A stretch of DNA of 63,644 nt, filler included, from Olpidium bornovanus S191 (lineage: Eukaryota > Fungi > Olpidiomycota): NCBI GenBank assembly GCA_017911155.1. It is 28 parts of 28 records of this genome, joined end to end, with 100 filler letters (N's around TTAATTAATTAA, not from the genome) between each part and the next. Parts side by side here need not be neighbours in the genome. Positions count along the whole stretch, not along the records: positions 37,753 to 41,373 come from JAEFCI010006819.1; 27 more parts are not named here. One strand, written 5' to 3'. Below the pieces are notes generated by a model. It had not been told where the DNA came from and searched no databases. It worked only from the letters and a program-made list of their open reading frames with translations. The position numbers were made by a program, and so were the translations under genes. Below, one piece after another: positions 37,844-40,800 of this stretch; position 1 is the first letter of the stretch, and every line of letters starts with the position of its first letter.

Positions 37844-40800
37844 CATTGCTCTTCGAAGCTTGCCGTTTGCGGAGGCCAACCGGTCGACCACCATCACTAA
37901 CATAGGGTGCGTAAAAGCCCTAGCGTGAGGCGAGAGCCAATTAGATTGTAGCAACGGTAAATGTCCTCGGTGTTTGCAACGGCACTTGCCATTGAAAGTA
38001 TCGAGCAATTTCAACTGGATGACGGTTCGTATCCAAAACTGTGGGCAGCCATCCCTGTGTAAGACTCGCATAACTGACCGTACAGGCAAGATTGATGTAG
38101 GCGAGTGCCGCATGCAGCCGCCGGGTTTGATCATTGTCGCTTCGGAAATACCCGCATAGGCACACCGAGAAAACAACCGCTGAAAAAGAAAGTTAAATTT
38201 ATCGGCACTTTAATCGAGACATCGTAATATTCAGAGGCATATAGGCAAAATGAAGCCGACATACCAAATGCGGTAATCGAGCTGATGTACCAGGGGTCGC
38301 TCCGGTCAAAATCAGGGACCTGCAACCCTGCCGACAACCAAAATTGACTGTTGCGCAGGCCGAACAGCGCCAGGCCCGCAACCAACCATCCTGCGAACAT
38401 GCTACTTTGGAGCTTCGACAGGCTGTCCGAGAACTCGAATCCATCAGACAGCAACGAGTGGGTGGAGCCGAAATTGTTGACCCAGCTGAGAACGGAGGCT
38501 GGCCTCCAGACGTGCGGTGGCAAGCTCCTCTGCTGAACGCCGGGGTTCTGTGCGGGACGGTGAGCACCGTTCCACTCGCGGAGATGGGCACTCTCGTGAA
38601 GATGATTGTGCATGTGCAGTTTGTTGAAGGTCTTGAGGCGGGCCACGCGGGATGCGGCGCGAACGGGGTCAAACCGCGAGCTTTCCACGAAAGCCACGAC
38701 GTCTTCGCTCGAGTCGCCCAAGCAGCACCAGTCCCCGTCCTGGTCCAGGTAAGCGAGCAGGAAGTGGGCCGGATCGTACTTGTGCGCGCACCCGCGGAAA
38801 AGCTGCGCGAACCGGTCGCGGATGGACTGGATCGCCCTCGGCTCGTTCAGCAGTTCCATCATCGGCAAGAAAGCCAACCTGATCTCCCCCATGTGTTCGC
38901 ATTTCACGCGGAGGACCGTCGGGTCCCACTTGATCGCAAACGGATACCGCCTCGTCGGGACGCTCGCCCTTGCCAGGTTGTCGAAGGAGGAATGGACGGC
39001 GGCTGGCAGGTCTTTCTCGGCCGCGGGCGCGGCGCGCTCTTCCGCAGCTCGAACCTCCGGCGAGTGCTTCGCGCCGGCGGCCGCCGCTCTCCCGGACGGC
39101 TCGGCGGCGGCGAGCCTGTTGACAAACCTGGGCTCGTCCGCCTTCAGCGACGGCATGGATTTGGCCTTCCGCCCCTGGCCGACGTCCTCTTCATTTTTCC
39201 GCTCGTTCAGGACGTGCTCGCTCTTGTTCAACCCGCGCAGGCTTGGTCTCCCGCCGCCAGGCGGCGTCGGTAGGGAGATCGAAATGCGCTTTTTGGGCGC
39301 CCGGCGCGGTTCGGCGTCGTTGTCCGACGCTGGAGGGGACGCCCGGGAACTCGGGTTTGCGGAGAAAATGGAAAAGCGGCTGGTGCGATCAGTGGCAGAA
39401 CCGTCTTCCGCGACGGCAGAGCCCGGCTGGCTATCCCGGTTGATCGAACCGGAGGATCTGGTAGGGGCGTCTGAGACGGTGGAAAGCAGCGAGCCCACCA
39501 CGGAGGAGCGGTGCTCCGAACGTAGGACACTACCGATGCTCGACGTTATGCTACGGTCGGGAAGCAGTGATGTAATAGAAAAGCCCTTGGACGGATCAAA
39601 TTGCTTGCGGGACGAAGCCGCCGACTCGACCTCCGAATCTGCGTTGCGCGCCGGCCCGCAGGCCGCCGGGCTGGAAGCGTGGCCGGCCGGATGAACGTCA
39701 GCGCGGTCGAGCACCGTTACGGACGCTCTACGGATTTCCTTGGGAACCGGCGGAGCTGCCTGAGGACGGGCCGCATTCACGCCTCCCGCCGCCGGCGCTG
39801 TTGAAGGCTCGGTCGCGTCCGGGGCAGGGTGAACCAGGGTTCTGGCGAGCTCCGCGTTCGTCGATTGGCCTCGTTCTGGCTTTTGGCCAGGAACAATCTT
39901 CCCGTTCGTCAACGCTTCCGCAGCGGACGTGATTTGTGCGCCCGTCGGCGCGGAAGTCGGAGGCAGGTTGGATCCGCGGTGTTGCGCGAGTCCTGCGACG
40001 AGCGCATTGGTAGCGGCGAAGGACTCCGTAACCAGGGGGTAGTTGAGCGAGCCGAACACGTCGACGGCCTTGCCGCCCAGATCGCCGCCGTCGGCTGCCA
40101 CGGAGCCGCGGGCGTTCCCGGCGAATCCTGCAGAAGGGCCCAAAGTTTCGACGGCGGACGACGCCAGGGCCGAGTACGGTGTCGAGCCCCGGGTTTGTTC
40201 TTGCGCGCGGCGTCCGGCGTCCGGCTGAGGAGACGGGCGGCCGCCGGGAGTCCACAGATTCGGCTGGGACGTCAACGGAGCCGGGGTGGCGAAACCGTGC
40301 GTCGGCGGCGGCGGCGGCGGCGGCGGCTGCTCCTCCTTCGTGTGGGAGACCAGCGCAGACCCTCGCAGATACCCCGGCGCCGGCTCACGGCCGGCGCGCG
40401 CCAATTGGCTACGATCAGGGTCGTCCCGGGCCGGCGAACGCAGCGGCGACCGGCCGGCGTCCTCAGCGGCCGGCGACCGCGGCAAAGAGCGGACGTCGCC
40501 CGGCGGAGCAAAATTGCTAAACTGTCCGGCGCTGCGGATTCCCAACGCCAGGCCCCGTATCCTCGGTGAAGGGCTTGACACCCTGTGCAGCGGGCTGAGA
40601 GGTGCCTTGACAAGGGCGCCCCTGTCGGCGGCGGCTTTGCTCGCCGGGTCCGGCGAGCGGTCGTCGAGCGCTTTGCGCGATTTGCCGTGGTCGCCTTCCT
40701 CGGGGGGCGGTGCCGGCTCCGACGGGGCCGCCGCTGCAGCCGCTCTTTCGGCGGAACTGGCGGGGGAGTTCGCGGGCACCGCGGGCTGCGCTTCGGCTGC

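Follow-up and report, generated by a model that had tools for sequence, protein, structure and literature searches.

A probable type-1 rhodopsin with glutamine and histidine in helix C, encoded by an expressed, mis-modelled gene of the Olpidium bornovanus S191 assembly

Gene structure and spliced transcripts

We analyzed a stretch of 63,644 nucleotides (hereafter the window) that joins 28 parts of the Olpidium bornovanus S191 assembly GCA_017911155.1, focusing on one gene whose product resembles a microbial (type-1) rhodopsin. This gene, on the minus strand, fills positions 37753-41373 of the window by itself; these positions are the entire 3,621-bp contig JAEFCI010006819.1, whose record is labelled Olpidium bornovanus as a metagenome-assembled genome (MAG). 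Its structure was derived from transcript contigs (Logan) of two runs, X1 (study P1) and X6 (study P2), which match the contig at an identity of at least 99% and whose run type is a guess. The gene comprises the following features, all on the minus strand:

41158-41226, minus strand: 5' untranslated region at its minimum extent; transcript contigs reach 41226 (X1) and 41215 (X6), and depth is zero beyond 41262
38265-41157, minus strand: exon 1, 964 codons plus 1 nt, an open reading frame with contigs covering 38265-40293 and 40344-41226
38674-38910, minus strand: PB1-like domain, residues 750-828, from Pfam, Atlas and an OPCA-type motif
38353-38406, minus strand: extra hydrophobic helix TM0, residues 918-935, SSMFAGWLVAGLALFGLR, from Kyte-Doolittle hydropathy; putatively one helix before helix A
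38180-38264, minus strand: intron 1, 85 nt, GTATGT...TTTCAG (GT-AG), absent from the X1 and X6 contigs
37990-38179, minus strand: exon 2, which runs from the last part of helix A through helix B and the B-C loop into helix C (...VEIARYFQW)
37992-37994, minus strand: CAA codon for Gln at the primary counterion site (bacteriorhodopsin D85, position 3.45), with no variant letters in two runs
37920-37989, minus strand: intron 2, 70 nt, non-canonical GC-AG, GCAAGT...GCTAG; the X1 and X6 contigs skip 70 bases
37844-37919, minus strand: exon 3, holding the remaining helix C and the C-D loop, (W)AFTHPMLVMVVDRLASANGKLRRAM
37907-37909, minus strand: CAC codon for His at the site of bacteriorhodopsin T90 and channelrhodopsin-2 (ChR2) C128 (position 3.50), contributed by helix C to the 'DC gate'
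37760-37843, minus strand: intron 3, 84 nt, GTAAGT...GGGAAG; the contigs depart from the genome at 37844
37753-37759, minus strand: first 7 nt of exon 4, TGCATGT, followed by the contig edge; they equal the next transcript letters after an AG

The reading frame opens at the ATG at 41157, which an in-frame TGA precedes by two codons, and exon 1 contains, in order, ~740 low-complexity residues, the PB1-like domain, TM0 and the beginning of helix A. Both X1 and X6 join 38179 to 38265 (85 bases left out) and 37918 to 37989 (70 bases left out); the second joint can slide by 2 and is compatible with GC..AG. Transcript depth is zero inside the introns as well as upstream of 41262, indicating that these contigs represent spliced RNA. 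Past exon 3, a further 558 nt are present in the X1 contig, which is 2,887 nt long, and a further 282 nt in that of X6, and exon 4 opens in the mRNA with C-M-S-A-V-A-T-T-T-R, so that the spliced message reads ...HPVEIARYFQW|AFTHPMLVMVVDRLASANGKLRRAM|CMSAVATTTR. The first-pass annotation of this DNA had assumed the splice junction within helix C; among the hazards it named were another junction and a sequencing error, either of which could bring back Glu or Cys. We show that the assumed junction is the one used in the mRNA, on which the transcript contigs of both studies agree, and that neither hazard is realized in them, as no differing letter or indel is listed over 37844-40293.

Two other readings of the locus were rejected. 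A GT donor at 37985 would define a 66-nt intron and shift the frame to read GFYAPYVSD, which differs from the joint seen in the transcripts. Plus-strand open reading frames of up to 309 residues are artefacts of GC-richness, the transcript splice sites being on the minus strand.

A helix C with Gln3.45 and His3.50

The helix C motif R-Y-F-Q-W-A-F-T-H-P is real: R-Y-F-Q-W (38003-37990) and A-F-T-H-P (37918-37904) are present on the minus strand as first annotated and are joined across the 70-nt GC-AG intron. The codons are those of Arg (CGA, 38003-38001), Tyr (38000-37998), Phe (37997-37995) and Gln (CAA, 37994-37992), a Trp codon split by intron 2 (TG at 37991-37990, G at 37919), and then Ala (37918-37916), Phe (37915-37913), Thr (37912-37910), His (CAC, 37909-37907) and Pro (37906-37904). 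Following a generic residue numbering (PMC13739731), the helix consists of R3.42, Y3.43, Q3.45, W3.46, T3.49, H3.50, P3.51, L3.53 and V3.56. The frame that characterizes helix C of type-1 rhodopsins, R-Y-x-x-W-x-x-T-x-P, is found in the spliced mRNA; the structural residues R3.42, Y3.43, W3.46, T3.49 and P3.51 are retained, and the proton-donor site 3.56 is Val. The substitutions proposed earlier at the two functional sites are borne out by the transcripts and by the alignment with rhodopsin phosphodiesterase (Rh-PDE) described below: the equivalent of D85 or Glu at 3.45 is Gln, and the equivalent of T90 or Cys128 at 3.50 is His.

We found no report in the literature of a natural His at 3.50, nor of a helix C that combines Gln3.45 with His3.50. 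In channelrhodopsins, position 3.50 forms the helix-C side of the DC gate, on which closing kinetics and bistability depend (PMC13739731). The step-function mutants of the ChR2 DC gate (C128-D156) are altered at the same position as the Olpidium protein, and in ChR2 the photocycle slows to bistability; no report of His among the ChR2 changes at 3.50 was found. As for the gate's other half, the 10 residues known from exon 4 include no Asp or Glu, and the bacteriorhodopsin (T90-D115, +25) and ChR2 (C128-D156, +28) spacings land on Ala and Thr, helix D being aligned by spacing alone. His3.50 may be without the usual acidic partner in helix D.

Kinship with microbial rhodopsins

Approximately 90 rhodopsin residues are present on the contig, and the exons were searched separately, exon 2 as a query of 63 residues. 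Exon 2 aligned to positions 27-75 of 224 of the Pfam profile Bac_rhodopsin PF01036 (E = 0.013, 15.4 bits, cut-off 24.6), and its only matches in the PDB were Rh-PDE structures (7cj3 and 7d7q; E = 0.021, 18 bits, weak). The Rh-PDE alignment spans helix B and the B-C loop and places RYFQW on RYAEW. In the language-model comparison (Atlas), the neighbours of exon 2 were Bac_rhodopsin clusters (score 0.90, 200 of 256 features shared), with all ten best family-bearing matches falling in one family or clan. Straight after the verified splice, exon 3 carries on the W-x-x-T-x-P register. Pfam, PDB and Atlas matches together with the spliced register support the assignment of this helix C to a microbial rhodopsin, as the first-pass annotation had it, and the gene product is very probably a type-1 rhodopsin. 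By sequence, its closest solved structure appears to be the enzyme rhodopsin Rh-PDE, weakly.

None of the searches recovered the downstream exons (helices D-G and any effector domain). A word search with residues 740-964 of the reading frame returned the deposited model alone. Scanned against metagenomes, the exon 2 protein yielded 323 pattern matches, none of them related, and an exact 24-mer from exon 4 had no match among metagenome contigs. An Rfam search gave no match.

Membrane layout and cytoplasmic N-terminus

Counting back from the aligned helix B, helix A corresponds to WYISSITAF|AVVFSVCLCGYF. A strongly hydrophobic core, MFAGWLVAGLALFGL (residues 920-934), precedes it, and within the tail of exon 1 the Kyte-Doolittle window exceeds 1.5 only at TM0. 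A comparison of the TM0 region with the PDB gave no useful match. Arg and Lys are concentrated in the A-B loop (RSDNDQTRR) and the C-D loop (GKLRRAM), as expected for cytoplasmic loops. TM0 and the seven helices would together form an eight-helix layout as in the enzyme rhodopsins (rhodopsin guanylyl cyclases, RGCs, and Rh-PDE). With this extra helix, the ~900 residues of the N-terminus would lie on the cytoplasmic side. Hydropathy and alignment register point to the RGC-type combination of TM0 and a cytoplasmic N-terminus. On balance, membership of the eight-helix enzyme-rhodopsin lineage seems slightly the better bet, and a guanylyl cyclase domain is possible but less likely than not.

The first ~740 residues are of low complexity and rich in Ala, Ser, Pro, Gly and Arg. 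The reading frame is open across 964 codons, with a G+C content at third codon positions (GC3) of 0.77, and the probability of meeting no stop in 740 codons at this composition is ~8e-7. A (GCG)n/(CCG)n triplet repeat at 40299-40327 (plus strand) codes Pro8 at residues 278-285, and the X1 contigs break there (40294-40343).

Residues 750-828 form a probable PB1 protein-interaction domain, according to the sequence comparisons. The region matched Pfam PB1 PF00564 (E = 0.034, 14.5 bits, under the cut-off of 23.6), and 26 of its 30 nearest Atlas clusters were PB1 (score 0.91). An acidic OPCA pattern is a mark of type-A PB1 domains; such a motif, YLDQDGDWCCLGDSSED, lies at 38701-38751 (minus strand), its match to the pattern being judged by eye. 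Against PDB sequences, the region gave noise and only a 12-bit match to the IAA4 PB1 domain, and a single-sequence AlphaFold2 model of it was unusable (predicted local distance difference test score 42). Our literature search retrieved no paper joining 'PB1 domain' with 'microbial rhodopsin', and no such fusion was found described.

The deposited model and published surveys

The deposited protein at this locus, BJ554DRAFT_136 (P0001), is a partial model of 1,086 residues that uses another first intron, misframes exon 2 and translates straight across intron 2, regaining the true frame only at ...AFTHPM. Because exon 2 is misframed and intron 2 retained, BJ554DRAFT_136 is devoid of helix B, of RYFQW and of any Pfam domain, and by the same misframing and the read-through of the GC-AG intron, the public proteome contains no recognisable rhodopsin at this locus (37844-38265, minus strand). 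Gene callers limited to GT-AG would overlook the GC-AG intron at 37920-37989.

Galindo et al. 2022 searched the proteome of the same assembly and did not find CyclOp, its rhodopsin and GC1 domains, or BeCNG1; the NOP-1 opsin was likewise scored as not found in O. bornovanus S191, and the authors placed the loss of the system before Olpidiomycota (PMC9616733). RGCs are listed by Broser et al. 2023 only for Blastocladiomycota, Sanchytriomycota, Monoblepharidomycota and Chytridiomycota, and the published surveys report no RGC for O. bornovanus or Olpidiomycota. The misframed model probably explains why CyclOp and the NOP-1 opsin were missing from the surveyed S191 proteome. Provided that the contig is truly Olpidium's, this gene very probably encodes an overlooked, expressed type-1 rhodopsin in the Olpidium lineage.

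Comparison with known photoreceptors

The Olpidium protein resembles the fungal RGCs (CyclOp/BeGC1, CaRGC, chytrid RGC(a)/(b)) in its zoosporic fungal host, its putative extra N-terminal helix, its predicted cytoplasmic N-terminus and the R-Y-x-x-W-x-x-T-x-P frame of helix C. Unlike them, it carries an N-terminus of ~900 residues with a PB1-like domain. The region where the C-terminal coiled-coil linker and class III cyclase domain of an RGC would lie is beyond the contig edge. The CyclOp motif, which we take to be Glu3.45 with Cys3.50, is replaced by Gln and His.

Natural Gln at counterion 1 is known in the NeoRs CcNeoR3 and CsNeoR1, which keep their family context (PMC10622942), and the Olpidium protein has Gln at the same helix-C site. 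CcNeoR3 absorbs at ~410 nm with a deprotonated Schiff base yet continues to modulate a heterodimeric cyclase as one of its subunits, and exchanging its Q for E failed to bring back absorption at long wavelengths (PMC10622942). The NeoRs carry Asp at 3.49 (D140) where the Olpidium protein has Thr, so that instead of the NeoR triad E3.45/D3.49/E7.46 (E136, D140, E262) we find Q3.45 and T3.49. The heterodimer partner and head-to-head gene cluster of the NeoRs are not visible on the Olpidium contig, which holds one partial gene.

Rh-PDE of Salpingoeca rosetta (7cj3, 7d7q) has the eight-helix layout, and its alignment with exon 2 covers helix B, the B-C loop and R-Y-x-x-W. Its residue at 3.45 is Glu, in contrast to Gln in the Olpidium protein, and the region of its PDE domain would be beyond the Olpidium contig.

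Proposed function and rival explanations

The overall best explanation, to which we would give about an even chance, is an expressed eight-helix sensory rhodopsin with Q3.45, H3.50 and V3.56 and a PB1-bearing N-terminus. Outward proton pumping in bacteriorhodopsin needs both an acceptor and a donor. With neither an acceptor (3.45) nor a donor (3.56), the Olpidium protein would not be an outward proton pump, and the eight-helix layout and cytoplasmic PB1 region argue for a sensor, making a sensory photoreceptor the most likely role. Loss of the carboxylate at 3.45 should lower the pKa of the Schiff base, and the lowered pKa would lead either to a deprotonated, UV- or violet-absorbing state or to a pigment that is slow, bistable or strongly shifted, the closest precedent being the natural Gln of CcNeoR3. 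His3.50 would face the retinal where ChR2 C128 governs the speed of the photocycle. Output could pass through a C-terminal module outside the contig, through PB1-bound partners, or both. We therefore lean towards a UV/violet-sensitive or slow/bistable sensory pigment, at less than even confidence. The first-pass annotation had inferred shifted absorption, a UV-absorbing or bistable pigment, or a retinal-free regulatory partner in a heterodimer of the RGC/NeoR type; its spectral part is reasonable and has a precedent in CcNeoR3. The contig provides no support for an RGC or a NeoR-like heterodimer partner, and the other RGC paralogs mentioned in that annotation are not visible in it.

Several observations weigh against this sensory reading, and some of them favour rival readings. 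Neutral residues at 3.45 are normal in rhodopsins that absorb visible light, namely Thr in chloride pumps and Phe in schizorhodopsins (PMC13739731), so UV absorption is not a necessary outcome. The protein could then be an ordinary rhodopsin responding to visible light, perhaps a channel or pump for anions, in which the helix-G carboxylate at 7.46 or a bound anion alone keeps the Schiff base protonated and Gln3.45 only tunes colour and kinetics; its Q-T-V motif (3.45/3.49/3.56) indeed resembles the motifs of non-proton pumps. However, TM0 and a ~900-residue cytoplasmic N-terminus with a PB1-like domain are foreign to known pumps and channels, and the sole sequence match in the PDB is an enzyme rhodopsin, which makes such a rhodopsin unlikely. 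Helices D-G, the Schiff-base Lys 7.50, the second counterion at 7.46, the retinal-pocket aromatics and any effector domain would all be beyond the contig edge, which also weighs against a firm assignment as a photosensor. The supply of retinal is not evident either, since phytoene dehydrogenase, phytoene synthase and carotenoid oxygenase were not found in the S191 proteome (PMC9616733). This absence would suit a retinal-free or degenerate rhodopsin-like relic of an ancestral photoreceptor, retained in a scaffolding or regulatory role, with the colourless CcNeoR4 and GhNeoRh as parallels; colourless natural members of the RGC family do exist (PMC10622942), two retinal-proximal positions are altered here, and the niche inside host roots is dark. 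Yet R3.42, Y3.43, W3.46, T3.49 and P3.51 are all retained, the gene is spliced, is expressed at good depth and has no stop in the visible part of exon 4, and zoospores swim freely in water, where light is available. The 'not found' enzymes, moreover, are weak evidence given an incomplete assembly with faulty gene models, this gene among them: the assembly comprises 29 Mb in 13,695 contigs with a BUSCO score of 75%, and 16% of the raw assembly was retained (PMC7865070). We regard a relic as rather unlikely.

The remaining doubts concern what the contig encodes at all and whose it is. All family scores are below the curated cut-offs, exon 3 alone, being too short, matched nothing in Pfam or the PDB, and an exhaustive HMMER search of 1.84 billion representatives, queried with exon 2, gave 0 relatives at E<=0.001, as might be expected if the motif had arisen by chance within a non-rhodopsin membrane protein. 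The low scores are attributable to the few rhodopsin residues present and to exons searched apart, and the HMMER null is uninformative on distant rhodopsins, as a query of this length requires ~41 bits. Three independent kinds of comparison agree on family and register and the motif continues across a verified splice, rendering a chance motif most improbable. The contig could also derive from another eukaryote of the zoospore wash that was co-binned with Olpidium, in which case the molecular reading holds and the evolutionary point falls. The S191 assembly is a composition-based bin from a metagenome of cucumber-root washings, whose zoospores were not axenic (PMC7865070), and the record is labelled as a MAG. 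Against such contamination, binning was conservative and included a filter on fungal similarity (PMC7865070), and the short, AT-richer introns with GTAAGT and GTATGT donors are fungal in style. Furthermore, the contig sequence recurs at >=99% in runs from several studies under one coded species label, and small shares of it occur in three soil metagenomes, as expected of a widespread root parasite. A contaminant origin therefore appears very unlikely.

The coded species label probably denotes a host plant or mixed sample, judging from two raw RNA runs under the same label (X20 and X23), which gave zero reads in ~1.5 Gb each and are no test. Run X3 from 2012 (organism B), with a share of 0.85, is a candidate for the original zoospore transcriptome.

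Significance

Olpidium is a root parasite and the closest flagellated relative of the terrestrial fungi, placed at the transition from swimming to terrestrial life. An expressed rhodopsin in Olpidium would alter the picture drawn from the survey of the same assembly, in which loss precedes the branching of Olpidium; if the finding is true, the loss of rhodopsin-based vision in fungi shifts to after the Olpidium split. It also shows how genes of this kind are undercounted when fragmented assemblies are surveyed through their proteomes alone. Natural Gln at 3.45 is already known from chytrid NeoRs; what is added here is a probable rhodopsin expressed in an organism reported to be without any. 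A wider proposal, which we consider rather doubtful, is that Olpidium keeps and expresses a receptor of the RGC/enzyme-rhodopsin lineage rebuilt with Gln3.45, His3.50 and PB1, a UV/violet or bistable sensor wired to PB1 partners. A helix C with Gln3.45 and His3.50 and its fusion to PB1 bear on counterion-free chromophores, bistability and the anchoring of photoreceptors, and are relevant to optogenetics.

Just upstream of the apparent transcript start at ~41226, we noticed G-rich runs at 41224-41373 (plus strand), consisting of GGGGGAGGG repeats and a run of 14 G beside the contig end. These may be a feature of the promoter region, or may be the cause of the assembly's stop.

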